Assembly: GCF_006345805.1 (NCBI RefSeq)
Contig: NC_042997.1
Span: forward strand, 156,302,001-156,366,000
DNA: 64,000 nucleotides
From: Octopus sinensis
Taxonomy: Eukaryota
Direction of reading: 5' to 3'
The position numbers were made by a program, and so were the translations under genes. The notes under the pieces are model-generated. The model was given only the letters and a program-made list of their open reading frames with translations. It did no database searches and was not told where the DNA came from. Shown here piece after piece: positions 1,123-50,636 of the stretch (its first letter is position 1; the number at the start of each line of letters is the position of its first letter).

Positions 1123-2338
1123 GCGTGCATGCATGAGTGCGTGTGGAAGCTGAAAAACTGTCAAGCAAAAAGGCAAAAAGTTCTTAGTCTAAACTACCTT
1201 CCAGAGCTTCTTTTTAGATAAGAAATAAGTTGAATACAGGAAAGTATCAGAAAATAGAAGAAAACAGTAAAATAGAATTCAAGAAACAGTTTAAAAATCA
1301 CATAAATTTAAAATAATTTATAATCTAATAATCCTTTCTACTATAAGCACAAGGCCTGAAATTGTGGGGAAGGGGATAGTCAATCACATCAGTCCCAGTC
1401 CTTGACTGGTACTTAATTTATTGATCTCAAAAGGATGAAGAGCAAAGTTGAGATCAGCAAAATTTGAAATTAGAACTAAAGACAGATGAAATGTCACAAA
1501 GCATTTTGCCGACATACTAACGATTCTGCCAGCTGACCCCGCTTCATTTAAAATTTTAAAATAATAATAAAAAAAAGAAGATAAATCCATCTTGAATTTA
1601 GAAGGATGACTAAGCTGATGTTTTGCTTAAAGTAGTGATCATATATTGAGAAGTCAAAAATAAGAGAGCACTGTTATATACTGGGATGTTGAGGTAAATT
1701 ATTATTAATTCAAAATAATATATTAAATGACTACTGTCAGTTTCCAAATCATAGACATATGGAATTTTTCAGTTGGAGTATGGATTTTGATTAAATAGAT
1801 CTGCCCGTGCCATGGACTGGTTTACAGAGAACCATTTTGCAATCATTTTGGAAACTTACAACCTGGTGTCTTTATCTTTTATCATTGATTATTTACTTGT
1901 TTCAGTCATTAGACTGTGCCCATGCTGGGGCACTGCCTTGAAGGATTTTAGTTGAATAAATCAACCCCAGGACATTTTCTTTTTTAAGCCTAGTTCTTAT
2001 TCTATCAATATATTTTGTCAAACTGCTAAGTTACATGGACATAAGCATACCAACACTGGTTGTCAAGCTGTGAGGGGGGACAAACACAGACACAAAGACA
2101 CACACATACATATATTATATAGGTTGATGGCAGTGCCAGTGGACTGACTCCTGCGCAGGTGGCACGTAAAAGGACCCACTACACTCTCAGAGTGGTTGGC
2201 GTTAGGAAGGGCATCCAGCTGTAGAAACTCTGCCAGATCAGATTGGAGCCTGGTGCAGCCATCTGGTTCATCCTCCAAACCATGCTAGCATGGAAAGCAG
2301 ACGTTAAACGATGATGATGATGATGATGATGATAATGA

Positions 2339-5891: not shown

Positions 5892-6104
5892 TTAACACTT
5901 TAGCATTTAAACTGGCCCAAATATTCTACCTGGTTTGTGCTCAGACTGACCAGATTTGGCTTTTCACATTTGCTCAACAATGCCATACTAAATATATACA
6001 ATCACATCATCAAAATTTCAAAGCTAAGAGATAATGCATGTTAATTCAAACCAATGTAAATAAGCTTTACATTTGACAGAGTAATCTGAATGCTAAAGAG
6101 TTAA
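5892..6104. mobile_element. piggyBac-type MITE (TTAA ends)
   Basis: TTAA-CACTTTAGC...GCTAAAGAG-TTAA; inverted homolog of 42863-43083. Confidence 0.7.
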
Positions 6105-16452: not shown

Positions 16453-17900
16453 TTAACCTCTTCTGCTGTGTGTTGTTTGTGGTGAAAAATGTCTAGCGAA
16501 GGCATGCTATCCAGCAACTTCAAAAGACATTTTACAACTAAACACTCACATCTTTAATGTAAAGATCCCGATTATTTCCAAAGACTGCCAGAACAGCAAT
16601 CTAAACAAAGAAACTATTTTGAGAAAAGGATGAATGCATCTGAAAAGGCTCAAGTTGCGTGTATTGATATAGCTGAAATGATTGCACTACAAATGAAATC
16701 ACATACTTTAGCCAAGTCGGTTATCTTACCCACTTGTAGAAAGATGGTTAAAACCATGATAGGTGATGAAGCCGAGCAAGAAATAAGGAAAGTTCTGCTC
16801 TCAAATAATACAATCCATAGGAGAATTATGGATTTATCTGCTGATATAGGGGAAAATGTACAGAACAAACTTCAGGACTCAGAATTTGTTCTACACTTTG
16901 ACGAATCAACTGACATTAGCAACAACGTACAATTATTTACATTTATTCACTTTATTGATGGTAACCTAATCATAAGTCAGTTCTTATGTTGCAAAGAAAT
17001 GCCACTCATTACAAGAGGTCAAGATATTTTTGACATTTTATCTGACTGCCTCGAAAAATGGAATTTATCCTGGAATTCATGTGTTGGAATATATACCGAT
17101 GGGACACGCCATCTATGATAGGCTCTATTAAAGGTTTTGTATCGCTCATAAAATAACAAAATCCTGATTTTTTTTATTAGCCACAAGGGCCCAAATCCTA
17201 ATGTTATATGTACGCGTTGCTTCCTACATAGGGAGGTACTAGTTGCAAAAATAATATCAGTTGAGTTAAAGCAAGTATTAAACCAAGTTGTTGAAATGGT
17301 TAATTATATTAAAAGTAGGCAGTTGAAGTGTTGCTTATTTGAACAAATTTGTGTTGATATAGATTCCCAGCACAAGCGCCTACTTTTACACACAAAAGTC
17401 AGATGGCTCTCAAATGTAAAGGTGGTATGTCGCATACATGAACTCCAGAAGGAACTGCATACATTTTTTAAAGAAGAAAAACATGAAAGCTTCTTGGAAT
17501 ATCTACAATGTGAATTTTGGGTTTCAAGCTGGAATATTTAACAGCGATATTTGCACAACTTTAAGCATCAACACAAGTATGCAAGGTAGAGATGAAAACA
17601 TTCTCCTCACTTCGACAGATAAGTTGGTTTTATTTAAAAGAAAGTTGTAATTTGGCAAAATAGAGCTGAAGGTGTAACTTCAAAATGTTTCCCTTAATAC
17701 GTAAAAGCTGCGTAAAAGAAATGACTCCTATTGTGTTTGAACATTTGACAAATCTGGAAGAAAAAAATCAACTTTTATTTTCTGTCATTGAACCCAGAAG
17801 AGTATAATTGGGTTCAAAATACGTTCATAAAAATTCCATCTAGTATTGGTCTGAAAATATGTGAAGAAGAGGAACTGGCATCTATGTCCAGTGATCGCGG
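16453..17900 (+). pseudogene. hAT transposase pseudogene (ZBED5/SCAND3-like family), main body
   Basis: BED finger remnant LCVVCGEK...KRHFTTKH; LHFDESTDIS; GIYTDG; CFLH; VRWLS; several frameshifts and stops; C-terminal dimerisation region missing. Confidence 0.9.
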
Positions 17901-18727: not shown

Positions 18728-20460
18728 ATTGTATATCAATTCAAATGTACCAATTATAAATGGAATGACATACACACACTCCTTAACTGTAAAACATACT
18801 TTTAGGTTAGGGGAAACTCCCCATCTTTTCAAGCTTACTTCTGTGCAATATTAGAGTTATTTGGTCCTACTATGTCGATTATGACCACCACTTGTTGCAA
18901 GATTCTATGCCTCTAACCTTGAGATTCATGTCAGAGGAGTGTAAGCTCCACAAATGGCCACCCAAGCTAGACAGGTCAAAGGATAGAGGCCAGAGTAAAT
19001 GGACCATCTCTTCCCAGAGGTAAAAACTGGGTTTGCATCAGGCCCAAACCCCTACCTAGGAAAAAGCAAAGTTACAGAAGCATTTATAACAATTCAAAAC
19101 CAAGAAGACTTAGGAGAGGAAAGCCTTTCTTCAGGAAAACATGTGAACCTACGAGGGAGGCAGAAGAGAGGATACCTTAAAAATAGTCAGAGGTGAGGTG
19201 CTCAAGCATCTAACTAGAGAGAAGCTGAGAAGACAGCCCGGTGAAGAAAGTTGGCAATGGGACTAAATGAAAGCAACAACAATAGTGAGACAATGGAAGA
19301 CTCTATGTGGTTACTTAATCTGCTAGATATAGAAGCTAGATCGCCCTCAAATCATACCTGTTGTCTTAAAAACAGGAAGACTATACTGTATAATGTAGTC
19401 ATAGATATACTATGCTTGAAAAAAATAATATCAGAATGAGCGTGCCTGGAATGCCTTTGATCATAGATCTGCTTAATAAAATCTGATCTGGAACTAAAGA
19501 TGGACAATATGCCATTAACGATTCTGCCAGCTCGGTGCCCTGATTATTAACATACAGCTATACAGACACCATAACATGCAAACATACACAGGCACAACAA
19601 CAACATCAACTGCATCAGGAACAGCAATATTAGTCAGTGTAGTTGGTGATATACAAAAAGACAGGATAGTTATGACTGGAATGCCTTTATAGCCATCATA
19701 TGTTGGTCTGTTCTATCAGAGCCAGCCAAGGGTTAAAAAAGAACAACTAAACACTCTTAAGAAAGCAGAGATGGTCTGCATTGGTAAAAATTGGTTAATG
19801 AAATTTTCCAAATTCAATAAATTTACGTGCTATGAGGAAGAATGAATTCTGAAGTTTTAGGAAGAGGTTGTTTGTTGGAGAGGAAATGAAGACGAGTGTA
19901 TTGGATGGCAGTAAATAAGATTGAAGGGTTTAAGAAAAGAGGGTTAGTTGGGGTGGAAGATCACAGGCCAAAGTGATAAAATGAAAACTGGGGAGAGGAA
20001 AGAAAGTGGAGAAGGAAAATATTTGAAGAATTCCTCAGTAAACATACAAGGGCATAGCACAATGCCATATATACACACACAGACAAAACAATATATACAT
20101 ACACACACACACATGTGTGCATGTATATATATATGTGTGTGTGTGTGTGTGTATATATGTATATACATTTACATACACATAAGATCAGATATACAGAGAC
20201 ACAACATATACATAAACACACTCACAAGTAGGTACAACAACATACATACACACATACTCATATCTATACATATAGGCATACGCATAATACACACACACAC
20301 CCACACACAGAAGCATGGTTAAGAAGCTTGCTTCCCAGCCACATGCAGCCATGTGGTTTCAAATTCAGTCCCACTGTGTGGTATCTTTAGCCAGTATCTT
20401 CTACTATAGCTTGAAGCCAAACAAAAGCTTTGTGAGTGGAATTGGTAGACAGAAACTAAA

Positions 20461-31253: not shown

Positions 31254-31620
31254 CATATAAAAATCACCATGATAGATTGGTAGCCACTGCACACATTTTT
31301 TTTCTCTCCTTGTTTTTTCCGCTCCCTGTTTCTCTTCTTGTTTCTTTCTGTGTTCCTTTCTGTGGAAGAGTGTAGGCTCGAAACGTAAAAGACTTTTTCA
31401 ATTCCTGAGCGTTATACTAATACATCTGTTTGTTTTCTACACCACCTGTCTTCGTCTTTTGAATTCTCCCCCTATGTATATATATATACGACGAGCTTCT
31501 TTCAGTTTCCATCTACCAAATCCACTCACAAGATGCCACGCAGTGGGACTGAACCCTGAACCATGTGGTTCGTAAGCAAGCTACTTACCACACAGCCACT
31601 CTTACGCCTGTGTGAGATTT
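31005..31620 (-). mobile_element. SINE family A with nested 31259-31472 insertion
   Basis: Both halves homologous to 146-527. Confidence 0.9.
31259..31472 (+). mobile_element. ~210-bp (TA)n-flanked element with minimal hammerhead-like motif (copy 1), inserted in a SINE microsatellite
   Basis: CTTT-CTGTGGA-A-GAGT-GTAG-GCTC-GAAAC-GTA-AAAG at 31356-31392; the host SINE resumes on both sides. Confidence 0.65.
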
Positions 31621-37289: not shown

Positions 37290-37700
37290 ATTCTTTGACT
37301 TGTTTCACTCATTTGACTGTGGCCATGCTGAAGCACTGCCTTTAGTCGAACAAATCGACCCCAGGACTCATTCTTTGTAGGCCTAGTACTTATTCTATCA
37401 GTCTCTTTTGCCATATCACTAAGTTATGGGGATGTAAGCACAGACACACAAACATATACACACACATACATATACATATATATATGTGTATACATACATA
37501 CATATGTACATACGTACGTACGTATGTATGTATACGATGGACTTCTTTCAGGTTTCCATCTACCAAATCTACTCATAAGGCTTTGGTTGGTCTGAGGTTA
37601 TAGTTGAAGACACTCACTCAAGGTGCCACACAGTGGGACTGAACCTGGAACCATTTGGTTGGTAAGCAAGCTACTTGCTACACAGCCACTCCTATACCTA
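37290..37700 (-). mobile_element. SINE family A
   Basis: Homology to 146-527. Confidence 0.9.
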
Positions 37701-39820: not shown

Positions 39821-41513
39821 TTCAATGATGCAACACAGGCAATTACTCTTAGAGATTGTTACTAAATGTATGAACTTCAAAGCAGTAATATAATATTTAA
39901 TTCATACAAGACTTTCCAATGCCAGTTTGATAATTTATTCATCAATAGTAAGTAATTATCAAAGTGTCAAATGAATGCTTTTTTCCTCTGTTATGATGGA
40001 ACTTAAGATATAGAAAATGCATTTTATGTGTATATGTTTAACTGTATAAACTTTAAAGAATTACAGACAGTAAGAGGAAATTTTAGGAAGTAACAGTGCA
40101 GTAGCTGTGTGGTCCGCTTCATGAAGTCCTTGCTCTTCCCTCCCCCATTCTCAAATTTTTCTTTTGGCTCACAGAACTTTTCCATTACTCCAGGTTTTAA
40201 AACACTGTTTTACAGGATCCCAGGTCTGGTGTCTGGTGGGAGGTAGAGAGGGAAGAAATGATCCTGAATCTGGAAATTCAGCCATTATAACAGAGTGAAG
40301 TCTGTCAAAGACACACTAAATATCAGATATTGGCATTATACTGGATGACAGACCGAGTCTACCACCTAAGTAGACCTTGGCAGGATTTGAACTTGGAATG
40401 CAAATAGCCAGAACAAATACAAGGTGACTACAAGGTTACAGTTCCTCCAGTCCACCATCCTGAATTAATATTCTTTAATAGGCCTTTCTGGAAATAACAA
40501 ATGGTCTGGAGAAGAGTGAGTGATGGCTGGCAGCACAAAAAGGGTGATGGTGGAATTTATTAGATATGAACAGTTTTAGTACCAATCCTGCATATACAGG
40601 TCTCATGAAAGAAGAGAGAAATAGAGTGACCAAGATGGTTACAAAATATACATAGGTTCAATACTGTCCCCAATATGAGTGGTATGGTGCACTGAATAAA
40701 AGAGGGGGTAAGTGGAGAGAGTGAGTGATAGGGAGATGAATGATAGAGAGATGAGAGAATATTAAAGAGGGGTATTGAATGGATGTTTAACACAGACATT
40801 AAATAAAAGATAAGAACCTCCCCCCCACACATATATATACAGAGAGAGAGAGGGGGTGACAGACAGACAGAAAAGCATATAAACACTTGTAAGCTTGAGA
40901 AGCATATTTACATGGAATACAAGATACAGATTGCAGAATAGAGGAAAAAGAAAACAAAATAGAATTATGTAGTCTCGACAGCTGTTTCAAGATAGCTATA
41001 ACTTATATAATAACCATATTCATATGTAATATGTACATGTTGTCATAGATGTGGTCTCGTCATAAGTTCCAAAGAAATTGTTAAAGTTAGGTGTCCCTCC
41101 TTAAAAGAAGGAAAATACATATTTCATGGAAGTGTCTACAAATATAAAGATTTAAAGAGAACAGAGTGGTGTAGTAAGGGAGAGGGTCATGGAAACACAA
41201 GAAATCATAAAGCAGAAAGGGTGGTTAAGGGGAATCATCAGATCAGGATACAGCTTGTTGAAGACCAGAGAGGGGGAAGATAAAGTTAGTAGATGGCCAA
41301 AGTAGTGTATGTGTGTGTCTGTGCATGTATGTGTGTGTGTGTATACACATACATACATACATGCACAGACATGCACATATACTGCTTTACCTTTTCTGTG
41401 AGTAACTACTAAAGCCAATTCTATTTTGTACTGACAACATCACCTCTTTGGCCATCTACTAACTTTATCTTCCCTCTCATTGGTCTTCTTCAACAAGCTA
41501 TATCCTGATATCC

Positions 41514-43974: not shown

Positions 43975-44720
43975 AAATTTTTTTTTTAATTTTCCTTAAA
44001 AACTTTTGAAAATTTTTCCCAAAGGTTTTTGAAAAATTTTTGAAAATTTTCCCCAAATATTTTTGAAAAGTGTTTTGAAAATTTTCCTCAATGATTTTTG
44101 AAAATTTTCCCCAAAAATTTTTGAAAAACATTTTGAAAATTTTTCTCAAACATTTTTGAAACATTTTTTGAAAATTTTCCGAAAAAATTTTCCCCAAAAA
44201 GTTTTGAAAAATTTTTTGAAAATTTTCCCGAAAGAATTTCAAAAACTTTTTTGAAAATTTTTTCCAAAAATTTTTGAAAACTTTTTTGAAAATTTTCCCA
44301 AATCATTTTTGAAAAATTTTTTGAAAATTTTCCCCAAAAATTTTTGAGAAATTTTTTGAAAATTTTCCCCAAAAATTTTTGAAAACATTTTAGAAAATTT
44401 TCCCCAAACCTTTTTTTAAATTTTTTCAAAAATTTTTGAAAAATTGTTTGAAAATTTTGAAAAATTTTTTGAAAATTTTTCCCCAAAATTTTTGGAAACA
44501 TTTTAGAAAATTTTCCCCAAAATTTTTGAAAAAGTTTTTAAAATTTTCTCCAAAAAGTTTTGAAAAATGTTTTGAAAATTTACCCCCAAATTTTTTTTTT
44601 AATTTTTGAAAATTTTCCCAAAAAATTTTTGAAAAATTTTTTGAAAATTTTCTCTCAAAATTTTTGAAAACATTTTAGAAAATTTTCTCCAAAATTTTTG
44701 AAAAATTTTTTGAAAATTTT
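43975..44720. repeat. Degenerate ~35-bp tandem satellite (TTTTGAAAATTTTCCCCAAAAATTTTTGAAAAAAT)
   Basis: About 20 irregular units read directly. Confidence 0.85.
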
Positions 44721-44810
44721 CGCTCAAGAATAGAAAAAGTCTTTTACGTTTTGAGCCTACGCTCTTCTACAGAAAGGGACACAGAAAAAACAAGGAGAGA
44801 AAAAAAAAAC
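44718..44810 (-). mobile_element. Partial copy 2 of the ~210-bp hammerhead-like element
   Basis: Reverse complement reads CTTT-CTGTAGA-A-GAGC-GTAG-GCTC-AAAAC-GTA-AAAG (G12 lost). It abuts (TA)n on one side and the 35-bp satellite on the other. Confidence 0.6.
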
Positions 44811-46430
44811 TAAATATATATATATATATATATATATAGTCACTTTTGTGACCTCTATTAATTTTGCCATTATGCTTTTTAATTTATTGTTTACACTTTT
44901 ACCGTTTTGAAAATCAGCACGTTTTCAACGGTCTTTCTTGTAAGACTGATAGAGGCAGTCGTGTTTTACTCTAGGCTTAAATAGTCGCTGACGAAGATTA
45001 AGATGGCCTGCACGCTGGGGACTTACCTCTCTTTATCAGTCATTAAGTTCAGTGCTCTTGTGGCTTTGAGTTATTTTAACAAAAACTGTGCTAGTCAGTA
45101 CCATCTGTCACTTTTTTGACCTCTATAAAATCTCCTTTATTTAATTGCTAATAAGCTACTCTTTTTTTAATCTGTGAGTGAATATATATATTTATATGTA
45201 TGGTGTGAGTGGGTGTGAGTGGGTGTGTGTGTGTGTGTGTGTGTGTGTAAATAGATATGTATACATGTGTGTAAGTGTGTGTATGCACACGCGAGCATCT
45301 GTGTATGTATATGCGAGCGAGTGTAGGTGTGCTTATATATATGTACGTGAGTGCGCGTACATATCCGTATATGTGAGCGTGTGTATATATCTGTATGTAT
45401 ATGTGTGTGTATATTTTATATATGTGTATGTATGTGAATGTATATATATATATATGTGTGTGTGTGTGTGCACGCGCGCGCATATATGCGTGTATGTGTC
45501 CGAGTGTTGAATCTTAAAGGCCAGCTAAGGAGAATCATATGTGTAACCAACCATGAAGAACAAATCAACAGTACAAAGAAATAAAATACCAATCTCTTTA
45601 AAGCGGCAACCACTTTAAGAGTATGAGAATCACCATCCCACTACATTTACGCATTCAAAGCAGTTTGCCAACGGCCCTTCACCAACAACATACCCTGATA
45701 GGCTTTGTGACTACTACTAAATTAAGGCCACGACAGAGAGATAGAATGTTCTTGAAGCCGAGGATTTTAAATTTATAGAGACAATATTTACATATCACCT
45801 GAGGAAACATAACTAGATCTCATAATGCAGGGAAATAGTTTCTTAATCAAGTACCTGCACATCTGGAGAACTACGTTGCTTGCAAATAATTGTAGCGATT
45901 AAAAAATAAATGTCCAACCGTACCCTTCTTGTTGATTCCAATGTTTTCAATTATCTATTCACACACGACAGATGCCCAAACGCAAACCTGGAAATACATA
46001 TAATACTACTACTGGAAAGCACAGTTTAAATGTGAAAGTGAACGAGTGAGCTTTATACTGTATTCTACTACGTTCTTAACAGAATATACTATAATTATAT
46101 ATATACATATATAAGACGGGCTTCTTACGGTTTACGTCAACCAGATATACTCACAAGTCTTTAGTCGGCCCGAGAGTCTATAGCAGAAGACACTTGTCCA
46201 AGGTGTCACGCAATAGTACTGATCCCAGAACCATGTGGTTGGGAATACATATATATTTATATATATCTGTATATATATATGGCAAGATGCGTGTGTGTGT
46301 ACGTGATTGTAGTTTATGCACATCCACAAATTAGCACGCATGTCGCTTAAATTTTAGAAGGACATTCGTCAACATCCTATCTGGGTTTTGTCAACTTATT
46401 TTTTTCCCAAGGCACCCGCGGATAGCGGTA

Positions 46431-48118: not shown

Positions 48119-49115
48119 ATAATGGCAGTGAAACATGGGCCGTGACTGCTGAGGATATGCGTAAGCTCGCAAGAAATGAAGCCAGTATGCTCCGATGGAT
48201 GTGTAATGTCAGTGTTCATACTCGACAGAGTGTAAGTACCTTGAGAGAAAAGTTGGACCTAAGAAGCATCAGTTGTGGTGTGCAAGAGAGACGTTTGCGC
48301 TGGTATGGTCATGTGGTGAGAATGGATGAGGATAGTTGTGTGAAAAAGTGCCACACCCTAGCGGTTGAGGGAACCTGTGGAAGAGGTAGATCCAGGAAAA
48401 CCTGGGACGAGGTGGTGAAGCACGACCTTCGAACTTTAAGTCTCACCAAGGAAATGACTAGAGACCGAGACCTTTGGAAGTATGCTGTGTGTGAAAAGAC
48501 CCAGCAGGACAAGTGAGGTCATAACCCGTGGCCTCAGTCTACTTTATGCATACCTTTCCTTCTTGGGACACAAAACTCTACTTGTGAAGACCTGTTGAGG
48601 CAAGTGAAAAACAAAATCAAAATCAAAATCGATCAACATCAATGGAAATCGTAGCTGTGATACCAGTGCCGGTGGCACATAAGAGAACCATCCAAACGTG
48701 GCCATTGCCAGCGCCGCCCTGACTGCCTCCGTGCCAGTGGCATGTAAAAAGCACCATCCGATCGTGGCCATTGTCAGCCTCGCCTGGACTCCGTGCCGGT
48801 GGCACGTAAAAAGCTCCATCCGATCGTGGCCATTGCCAGCCTCGCCTGGCCTCCGTGCTGGTGGCACATAAAAAGCACCATCTGGTCATGGCCGTTTGCC
48901 AGCCTTGTCTGGCACCTGCGCCGGTGGCATGTAAAAAGCACCCACTACACTCATGGAGTGGTCGGCGTTAGGAAGGGCATCCAGCCGTAGAAATATTGCT
49001 AGATCAGACTGGGCCTGGAGCAGCCTTCTGGCTTCCCAGACCCCAGTTGAACCGTCCAACCCATGCCAGCATGGAAAGTGGACACTAAACGATGATGATG
49101 ATGATGATGATGATG
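48119..49115 (+). mobile_element. RTE-clade LINE, 5'-truncated 3' end
   Basis: [10 protein letters not shown]...LRWYGHVVRM...GRGRSRKTW...DRDLWKYAV (ORF ends 48516), 3' UTR and (GAT)n tail; 5' junction lies in (TA)n. Confidence 0.92.
48665..48940 (+). repeat. ~62-bp tandem repeat (~4.3 units) in the LINE 3' UTR
   Basis: GTGCCGGTGGCACGTAAAAAGCACCATCCGATCGTGGCCATTGCCAGCCTCGCCTGGCCTCC repeated. Confidence 0.9.
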
Positions 49116-49626
49116 AATGGGGGAGGCTGGTTTATGGGGTTACCCTGGTTTTCTCATCCATAAGGGGTCAGGTGATATACTATAAGACCAAACCCCTTAT
49201 GGAAGAGAAACCTAGTGTGACTCCATAAACTGACCTCACCCATCATAATATTAACTGCTCTACATCTTAGAATGAGCTTCTTCTCTTGATGTATATTTTT
49301 TTACAAATGATATATATAAGGGCAAATTTTAGCCATTTCTCTGCAGACTGGAAAAAAAAATGATGGAGAACCTTAATTGATTTTTGAACCTTATTGAGTT
49401 TTCATCAGAGGTGTCTACATCATACTGACAGGCTCCAGATAAACAAGCAATCAAACTGTTTATATACTCAACAAATACAGCAGTTACTCTATGAAAAATT
49501 CCCTAATTTGCATACCAAAAGTGTTTAACACTCTATAAATACCAGCAGCCTATCAACGAGGATCTTAGTCCATACAATATCAAGGTATGATATAATATAC
49601 ATGCAACATAATATATATATATATAT

Positions 49627-49836
49627 CGCCATGTTGATTCGCTAGCTTTTGCACGCATATTTTTTTCTCTCCTTCTTTCTGTGTTTTTTTTCTCTGTGTA
49701 TCTTTCTGTTGAAGAGCGTAGGCTCGAAACGTTAAAGACTTGTTTCATTTATATTTCCCGAGCGCCATACTAATACAATTGTTTGTTTGTATTCCACCTG
49801 CCTTCGTCTTTTGTCTATTTTCATAAAGCTTACCGT
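49627..49836 (+). mobile_element. ~210-bp (TA)n-flanked element, Penelope-like terminal fragment with minimal hammerhead-like motif (copy 3)
   Basis: TCTTT-CTGTTGA-A-GAGC-GTAG-GCTC-GAAAC-GTT-AAAGA at 49701-49738; homologous to 31259-31472 and 44718-44810; (TA)n on both sides. Confidence 0.65.
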
Positions 49837-50014
49837 TATATATATATAATATATTGATCAAATATTCAATATGAGCTATATGTAGACATGCATAAATTCT
49901 ATAGGTTTAAAACCTTTCATCAGATCTCCATGAATCGAACTTTCTTCAATGCAGTTAATCTTACAACCTCTTTTATATCTACCCCTTTTGATGTTTGGGA
50001 ATTCTCTGATATTT

Positions 50015-50102
50015 TTTCGGCTGACGAGTACGAGCCATCTGTATTCACTGCATTTTTTGTAGCTTATTAAAGATGTCCTCGTACGAAACGATCGTACCGA
50101 GA
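50015..50102 (+). ncRNA. Type I hammerhead ribozyme (intact core)
   Basis: Helix I TTTCGG(50015-20)/CCGAGA(50097-102); core CTGACGA(50021-27); helix II GTACGAG(50028-34)/CTCGTAC(50078-84); GAAA(50085-88); helix III A-C/G-T with loop GATC (palindrome ACGATCGT); GTA cleavage triplet, predicted cut after A50096. Confidence 0.9.
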
Positions 50103-50636
50103 TTTTAATCCATTCTTGTTGCTTTTTTCCTATATATATATATATATATATACCGGAGTAAACACACAATTTCCATGTATTAATTATATTTCCTTTATTA
50201 ATGACAATATGTATTTTAACCAAAGATTCGATGTAAGGTTTTTTCCTCAAATTTTATAATTTTTTTAATATATATATATATATATTTTGAGCTCATTTTT
50301 GTTTATCGCTCGAAAATTGACCGTTATTTGTAAAGGACCAATCAAACAAGTCCATTTTTAAAGGCGTAGTGTTTATACTAGTCTGGATAGAATTGACATA
50401 TCGGTTCTATTCTAGCAAAAACTGTCCGATGAATGGCAATGGGAAACTCAGAGTAACAGGTTTTGTAGAATTTTCTGCTGCTTTAAATAAAGGAGATTTT
50501 AATAGAGTTTAAAACAAGGAGATTTTAATAGAGTTTAAAATTTTGAAGTAGAAATTGAACAAACATGTTTAAGTGTTCAAATGTTCACATAAAATGCAAT
50601 GAGTTTCACAATATATATATATATATATATACATAC

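Follow-up and report, generated by a model that had tools for sequence, protein, structure and literature searches.

Type I hammerhead ribozymes are well documented in the Penelope-like elements (PLEs) and retrozymes of animals including molluscs. The hammerheads of animal PLEs possess an enlarged helix II of 7-8 bp with the pair G10.1-C11.1 as well as a palindromic helix III; a dimeric mode of action has been proposed for them, and they show low activity in vitro (PMC4209133). They mostly occur as single dispersed copies, some of which lie 100-700 bp apart on opposite strands (PMC4209133). PLEs prefer (TA)n targets and carry the hammerhead close to their 3′ end, with a tail of 30-40 bp (PMC8557442; also PMC11167929).

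Animal retrozymes are low-GC units of 170-400 nt with type I hammerheads and reach thousands of copies in mussel (PMC7229834). It is now argued that they stem from the pLTRs of PLEs (Li et al. 2026 preprint, 10.64898/2026.07.22.740005). Among the cephalopods, in which Penelope elements are abundant (PMC8967140), the giant squid is reported to have 235 type I hammerhead loci annotated by Rfam (PMC6962438).

Here, we present the computational analysis of a type I hammerhead in a stretch of 64 kb from Octopus sinensis, the whole of which is referred to as the window. The motif had been noticed in a reading of the letters alone, and the claims of this sequence-only reading were followed up by structure prediction, pattern and covariance searches and comparison with the systems described above.

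Architecture of the hammerhead motif

Direct reading of positions 50015-50102 on the plus strand revealed a complete, sequence-intact type I hammerhead in which all core nucleotides and all three helices are present. Its parts are as follows:

50015-50020 (+): 5′ strand of helix I, UUUCGG, pairing with 50097-50102 in 6 bp including one G-U
50021-50027 (+): core box CUGACGA (C3-A9), read directly and aligned to the core of Rfam RF00163
50028-50084 (+): helix II domain of 57 nt, a 7-bp stem with an unbranched distal hairpin of 43 nt in the minimum-energy fold
50028-50034/50078-50084 (+): helix II strands GUACGAG/CUCGUAC, 7 Watson-Crick bp with G10.1-C11.1 as the closing pair
50085-50088 (+): core box GAAA (G12-A15.1), read directly and aligned to RF00163
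50088-50095 (+): helix III, formed by the perfect palindrome ACGAUCGU with the pairs A50088-U50095 and C50089-G50094 and the loop GAUC
50096 (+): A17, lying 5′ of the bond predicted to be cut (50096/50097), placed by the geometry of the motif
50097-50102 (+): 3′ strand of helix I, CCGAGA, pairing with 50015-50020

In addition to the boxes CUGACGA (50021-27) and GAAA (50085-88), the type I core comprises A50088-U50095 as the pair A15.1-U16.1 and A50096 as H17. Helix I is open-ended, and both helix II (7 bp plus the extension) and helix III (2 bp plus GAUC) are capped. The cleavage triplet is GUA with A50096 as its last base, and the cut is predicted between 50096 and 50097. The palindrome ACGAUCGU gives a helix III of 2 bp with the loop GAUC in a monomer and an intermolecular helix of 8 bp in a dimer. 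All of the parts that the sequence-only reading had named, i.e. the intact core with three pairing helices, the helix I of 6 bp with one G-U, the helix II of 7 perfect bp and the palindromic helix III, were recovered by direct reading.

With respect to this architecture, the motif most resembles the type I hammerheads of PLEs and retrozymes, a known kind of animal ribozyme, and the earlier assignment of the short palindromic helix III to these two kinds of elements is borne out by the literature (PMC4209133, PMC7229834). In common with PLE hammerheads (Cervera & de la Pena 2014), it is of type I, with a 7-bp helix II that lies within the PLE-associated range of 6-8 bp, the pair G10.1-C11.1 (G50028-C50084) and a very short palindromic helix III, in which ACGAUCGU provides the PLE-type palindrome of positions 15.2-16.2 and loop 3. 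It further shares with them the occurrence as a solitary copy near an opposite-strand copy, the AT-rich/(TA)n context and the location near the 3′ end of its putative element (PMC4209133, PMC8557442). In contrast to the minimal hammerheads of PLEs, it lacks the unpaired base between A9 and G10.1, as A50027 is directly followed by the paired G50028, and its helix I comprises 6 bp instead of 4-5 bp. It also differs from PLE hammerheads by the additional 43 nt in helix II, and neither a PLE ORF nor a pair of pLTRs is found in the 64 kb.

The surrounding putative unit, which is described below, resembles metazoan non-LTR retrozymes with ~275 nt between its inferred boundaries and a GC content of 34%, compared with the published 170-400 nt and <45-50% GC, and invertebrate retrozymes likewise have a 2-bp helix III capped by a tetraloop (Cervera & de la Pena 2020, PMC7229834). 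Unlike retrozymes, it is present as a single copy and not as a tandem array, and it is not predicted to be unusually self-paired, as most retrozyme circular RNAs are. Furthermore, helix II greatly exceeds the canonical length of 4 bp, and a contact motif between loop 1 and loop 2 is not evident. The core is identical to that of the canonical type I hammerheads of Schistosoma/newt type represented by RF00163, and so is the GAAACG..CGU helix III, with 45/45 positions aligned; the members of this family differ from it in that it contains an insertion of 47 nt within the stem II loop and scores 21.4 bits versus a gathering score of 34. As modelled, the distal extension of helix II by 43 nt is the only unusual trait of the motif.

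Predicted folding of monomer and dimer

RNAfold of 50005-50110 resulted in -27.2 kcal/mol (z = -3.3). For the helix II domain of 57 nt, the minimum-energy fold reaches -18.0 kcal/mol (z = -4.7) and comprises, from base to tip, stems of 7, 5 and 5 bp, with internal loops of 1x2 and 7x8 between them and a terminal loop of 5 nt. The pairings CAUCU/AGAUG (50036-40/50071-75) and CUGCA/UGUAG (50048-52/50058-62), which had been recognized by eye, are both part of the prediction. However, helix II had also been described as branched, and here the predicted fold disagrees, since it forms a single long hairpin interrupted by two internal loops. Taken by themselves, the distal 43 nt have a z-score of -2.8, and 4 of 200 shuffles fold equally well; this extension is therefore plausible but weakly supported by folding. 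The view that the insertion in loop II is unusual applies in part: a stem of 7-8 bp is typical for the minimal hammerheads of PLEs (PMC4209133), whereas the distal extension of 43 nt is atypical.

The minimum-energy fold of the monomer (-26.4 kcal/mol) pairs ACGA of the core with UCGU of helix III and is predicted to be inactive, while the catalytic hammerhead fold reaches -22.0 kcal/mol and is thus 4.4 kcal/mol less stable. In the cofold of two copies, the minimum of -58.8 kcal/mol is a double hammerhead joined through the 8-bp intermolecular helix III ACGAUCGU, which is favored by 6 kcal/mol over two monomers. The cofold agrees with the earlier proposal that a palindromic helix III of this type is able to act in dimers. 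By comparison, the designation of the RNA as probably active appears overstated in view of the inactive ground state predicted for the monomer, the absence of a dimer partner in cis within the 64 kb and the low in vitro activity of the PLE-type relatives.

Among the rival explanations, the one that survives best, although it is improbable, is a self-sufficient ribozyme active as a monomer, in which tertiary contacts or a regulatory module responsive to a ligand or protein would come from the 57-nt helix II domain. The sequence-only reading had proposed such contacts or such a module for the insertion in loop II. While coral and mussel retrozymes with the invertebrate design, a 2-bp helix III capped by a tetraloop, cleave efficiently in monomeric form (PMC7229834), the ground state predicted here for the monomer is the inactive one (-26.4 vs -22.0 kcal/mol), and PLE-type hammerheads with a long helix II are poorly active in vitro (PMC4209133). 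In principle, the internal loop beyond the 7-bp stem could be oriented towards helix I, but the loop-loop contacts known so far depend on a helix II of ~4 bp, and a longer stem II reduced activity in the hammerheads tested (PMC3088659). Finally, the domain as a whole folds far better than its shuffles (z = -4.7), yet its distal extension is AU-rich and folds only marginally better than chance, and neither a closing stem nor a notable loop 1 is present.

The putative insertion unit and its genomic surroundings

The hammerhead is part of a putative insertion unit, named family A, whose boundaries we infer from the TA-repeat blocks on both sides:

49837-49854 (unstranded): TA-rich block upstream of the unit, read directly
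49855-50130 (+): putative insertion unit of family A, ~275 nt with 34% GC
50131-50152 (unstranded): (TA)11 block directly after the unit, found by TRF

The distance between the hammerhead and the 3′ end of the unit, and with it the 3′ TA block, is 28 nt. Since TA blocks occur every few hundred bases in this region (TRF), the TA flanks are weak evidence by themselves. Over its full length, the unit shows no unusual degree of structure (z = -1.1), and a retrozyme-like rod structure was rejected on this value. By self-BLAST, TRF, our own descriptor and a covariance model, a second copy is absent from the 64-kb window, and the single copy does not form the head-to-tail tandem that characterizes retrozymes. 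An origin of the unit from a tRNA-derived SINE was likewise rejected, as it contains no tRNA-like sequence.

Regarding protein-coding remnants of a PLE, tblastn with the protein Poseidon_Ac (PMC11167929 supplement) gave nothing significant for reverse transcriptase or endonuclease in the whole window, and Pfam detected no RT or EN domain in the open segments from 45.5 to 54.5 kb. The flanking RT / GIY-YIG ORF of a PLE with pseudo-LTRs is therefore absent from the window. The tail of a LINE is the only protein-coding signal near the motif.

This LINE fragment is the C-terminal tail of a reverse transcriptase at ~48120-48516 (+), which is 5′-truncated and directly preceded by an extended stretch of (TA)n. 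Its identity amounts to 82% with a protein of Octopus vulgaris and to 82-88% with octopus proteins. The tail is followed by a relatively GC- and CpG-rich tandem array with 4.4 copies of 62 nt (48666-48942). Farther upstream, an ORF of 162 aa at 16630-17118 (+) is presumably a fragment of a hAT-type transposase, and at 44004-44824, short direct repeats spaced by 11-12, 23 and 35 nt form a large array that yields a repetitive ORF of 137 aa; weak matches to U4 snRNA within this array are spurious. Many repeats of the window are shared, with 75-95% identity, by a 20-kb piece of the O. vulgaris chromosome OX597824.1 (L027). The LINE tail and these shared repeats identify the window as octopod.

Taken together, we infer that the hammerhead probably belongs to a solitary copy, itself probably young, of a non-autonomous element of the Penelope/retrozyme type. 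Such a retroelement of ~275 nt and of the PLE or animal-retrozyme kind would have inserted into an octopus (TA)n microsatellite, and its hammerhead would cut longer-than-unit transcripts after GUA, between 50096 and 50097. As helix III comprises only 2 bp, efficient cutting would be expected upon pairing of two copies, which may join through ACGAUCGU into a double hammerhead and would require either tandem copies or two transcripts. Since no partner is present at the locus, the copy is most likely passive, and probably a young insertion instead of a ribozyme selected by the host.

Neighboring repeats with hammerhead boxes

Two further TA-flanked short repeats, located at a distance of at most 700 bp from the motif, carry hammerhead-like boxes. 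These repeats, termed family B and R1, and their copies in the window are:

49320-49548 (-): TA-flanked element of family B, ~229 nt, 86% identical to O. vulgaris L027 19442-19666
49368-49414 (-): decayed type I hammerhead of family B, 25 bits and E = 6e-5 with the covariance model
49627-49813 (+), 31313-31461 (+) and 44734-44805 (-): three copies of the TA-flanked repeat R1
49706-49732, 31360-31386 and 44746-44772: boxes similar to minimal PLE hammerheads, one in each R1 copy

The element of family B is situated ~600 bp from the motif on the opposite strand, so that the published PLE layout of opposite-strand copies 100-700 bp apart is found here. The covariance model was built from nine type I hammerheads and run on 84 kb, in which it gave no match beyond 49368-49414 (-). 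In the window, the hammerhead of family B is dead through the changes of G10.1 to A, G12 to A and CG to CA in helix III. Its counterpart in O. vulgaris (L027 19486-19532, minus strand), detected with a relaxed descriptor, has an intact core and reads ACCU CUGAUGA GAACC AAAUAA GGUUU GAAA AUCGAU UA AGGU. The CpG formed by C11.1 and G12 was lost differently in the two copies, as TpG in one and as CpA in the other. Since it was destroyed in a different way in each, the ancestor of the two copies would have carried a canonical hammerhead without defects, whose palindromic helix III was AAUCGAUU. Outside the core, homology between the unit of family A and the element of family B was searched for and rejected.

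The R1 copy at 49627-49813 sits between the hammerheads of family A and family B. Its box, CUGU-N-GA A GAGC GUAG GCUC GAAA CGU A, shows a bulged base after A9, a helix I of 4 bp and a loop-less palindromic helix III, all of which are traits of the minimal hammerheads of PLEs. The R1 copies vary exactly at N7 (U, G, A), and each of the three has U in place of A at core position 6. The box may represent either a hammerhead variant or one that is inactive. This short stretch is a landing site for several short, putative retroelements related to hammerheads.

Retention of CpG dinucleotides

The ratio of observed to expected CpGs in the window is 0.34. The motif contains 8 CpGs within its 88 nt, all located in stems or core, and only 0.23% of 88-nt windows carry as many, while the remainder of the surrounding unit of ~275 nt has a single one. 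The early remark that CpGs are kept against a CpG-poor background is therefore confirmed. As these 8 CpGs persist in a CpG-depleted genome and the family B copies lost theirs, the family A copy is suggested to be young.

Conserved intronic hammerheads are known in amniotes, and the preservation of all 8 CpGs of stems and core in a CpG-depleted genome could also be ascribed to a host-domesticated ribozyme, e.g. within an intron or UTR, retained at this locus by selection. We consider this quite unlikely, as the motif is surrounded by a mixture of repeats, microsatellites and a LINE fragment in which no exon is recognizable, and two neighboring elements of like kind are plainly decaying. A young copy of a PLE/retrozyme-type element is still preferred.

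Rfam score and expectation by chance

The Rfam model RF00163 (Hammerhead_1) aligns to 50015-50102 over model positions 1-45/45 with 21.4 bits (E = 0.0075 in a search of 301 nt). The proposed identification by cmsearch hence succeeded with respect to the full-length alignment, but not with respect to the score, which stays below the gathering score of 34 bits because the 47 nt between the strands of stem II are charged as an insertion. Over the whole window, the motif was not reported by Rfam, either at the gathering threshold or in the E-value scan, and routine annotation of a genome would overlook it.

The E-value scan of the whole window contained >100 sub-threshold matches to microRNA families, for example at 41300-41390, 20065-20195 and 37444-37540. 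All of these are located on TA/TG microsatellites and were rejected as false positives.

Our own descriptor combines the core boxes with helix I, helix II and a helix III with NUH and was applied to both strands of the window, where 50015-50102 is the sole match on either strand. In 300 dinucleotide shuffles of the window, the loose setting gave 0.017 matches per window and the medium setting 0.003, with none at the observed stringency. A first-order Markov sequence of 200 Mb with the composition of the window yielded 27 loose and 5 medium matches, the latter with a helix I of at least 5 bp and a helix II of at least 4 bp; a helix I of at least 6 bp together with a helix II of at least 5 bp was absent from it, and so was a palindromic helix III. 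By extrapolation, well under one motif of such quality is expected by chance per genome of 2-3 Gb.

That a simple motif was matched by chance in a large genome rich in AT is the weakest of the explanations and highly improbable, for although the hammerhead consensus is simple, random matches do arise in large databases (PMC3088659) and a 21-bit match, which is under the gathering score, would appear ~10 times by chance per genome of ~2-3 Gb according to our own scaling of the E-value, the 200 Mb of matched random sequence offer no comparable combination of helices and no palindromic helix III, the CpG-rich stems stand out, G10.1-C11.1 and the palindromic helix III lay outside the basic pattern, and the motif sits among other hammerhead-bearing repeats.

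Implications for putative octopod retroelements

Given the wide documentation of such hammerheads in animals, one more intact, solitary copy from an octopus is of limited significance on its own. However, the long insertion in stem II drops the hammerhead below the Rfam threshold, and routine counts for cephalopods, such as the 235 of the giant squid, are consequently likely to be underestimates. Furthermore, the occurrence of three hammerhead-related short repeats in one TA microsatellite, one of them common to O. vulgaris, suggests element families specific to octopods. As a tentative proposal that we rate as possible and no higher, several families of short hammerhead retroelements (230-275 nt) that target TA microsatellites may exist undescribed in octopus genomes, one of which would have an extended helix II of 57 nt that is missed by Rfam. 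If this were true and the elements were transcribed, they could supply abundant small circular RNAs in cephalopods, and the long helix II would be an extension of the type I hammerhead that is both conserved and functional. Octopod element families may be mined for circular RNAs as well as for natural variation in the architecture of stem II.

Related hammerheads in other sequence collections

Relatives of the family A unit were found neither in the window nor in the 20 kb of O. vulgaris (L027) by self-BLAST and BLAST. Look-ups of the exact products of two ORFs overlapping the motif and of a third ORF from the LINE tail returned nothing on record, and a protein-word search with the ORF spanning the hammerhead, aimed at copies of the repeat, gave no candidates. 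The DNA pattern scan of viral contigs resulted in two matches only, both due to chance and located in coding-like sequence.

The lizard PLE protein Poseidon_Ac was used in a search for octopus PLEs; it produced 3525 matches, with no cephalopod among the 120 listed, and supplied PLE loci as positive controls. One of the loci, on the ENA contig L028, contains tandem PLE ORFs with the minimal hammerhead CUGAUGA-A-GAUCCG..CGGAUC-GAAAGCUC and provided the positive control for the descriptor:

L028 4631-4664 and 7284-7317 (+): minimal hammerheads, each after a successive plus-strand PLE ORF
L028 ~1358-1391 (-), reverse-complement 6071-6104: third minimal hammerhead, beside an inverted ORF fragment

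The same kind of pattern scan in metagenome DNA detected 24 loci, about half of which are genuine canonical type I hammerheads from other eukaryotes. These share the helix III ACGAUCGU and the segment GAAACGAUCGU with the motif, and their helix II comprises 4-6 bp throughout, so that a long helix II like that of the motif is absent from the metagenome loci. In three of the contigs, hammerheads with ACGAUCGU occur as direct repeats:

L018 1046-1093 and 1313-1360: 267 nt apart
L008 763-809 and 1695-1741: 932 nt apart
L021 2527-2574 and 4609-4656: 2082 nt apart

These three contigs are probably derived from small eukaryotes, and the layout of their repeats is retrozyme-like.
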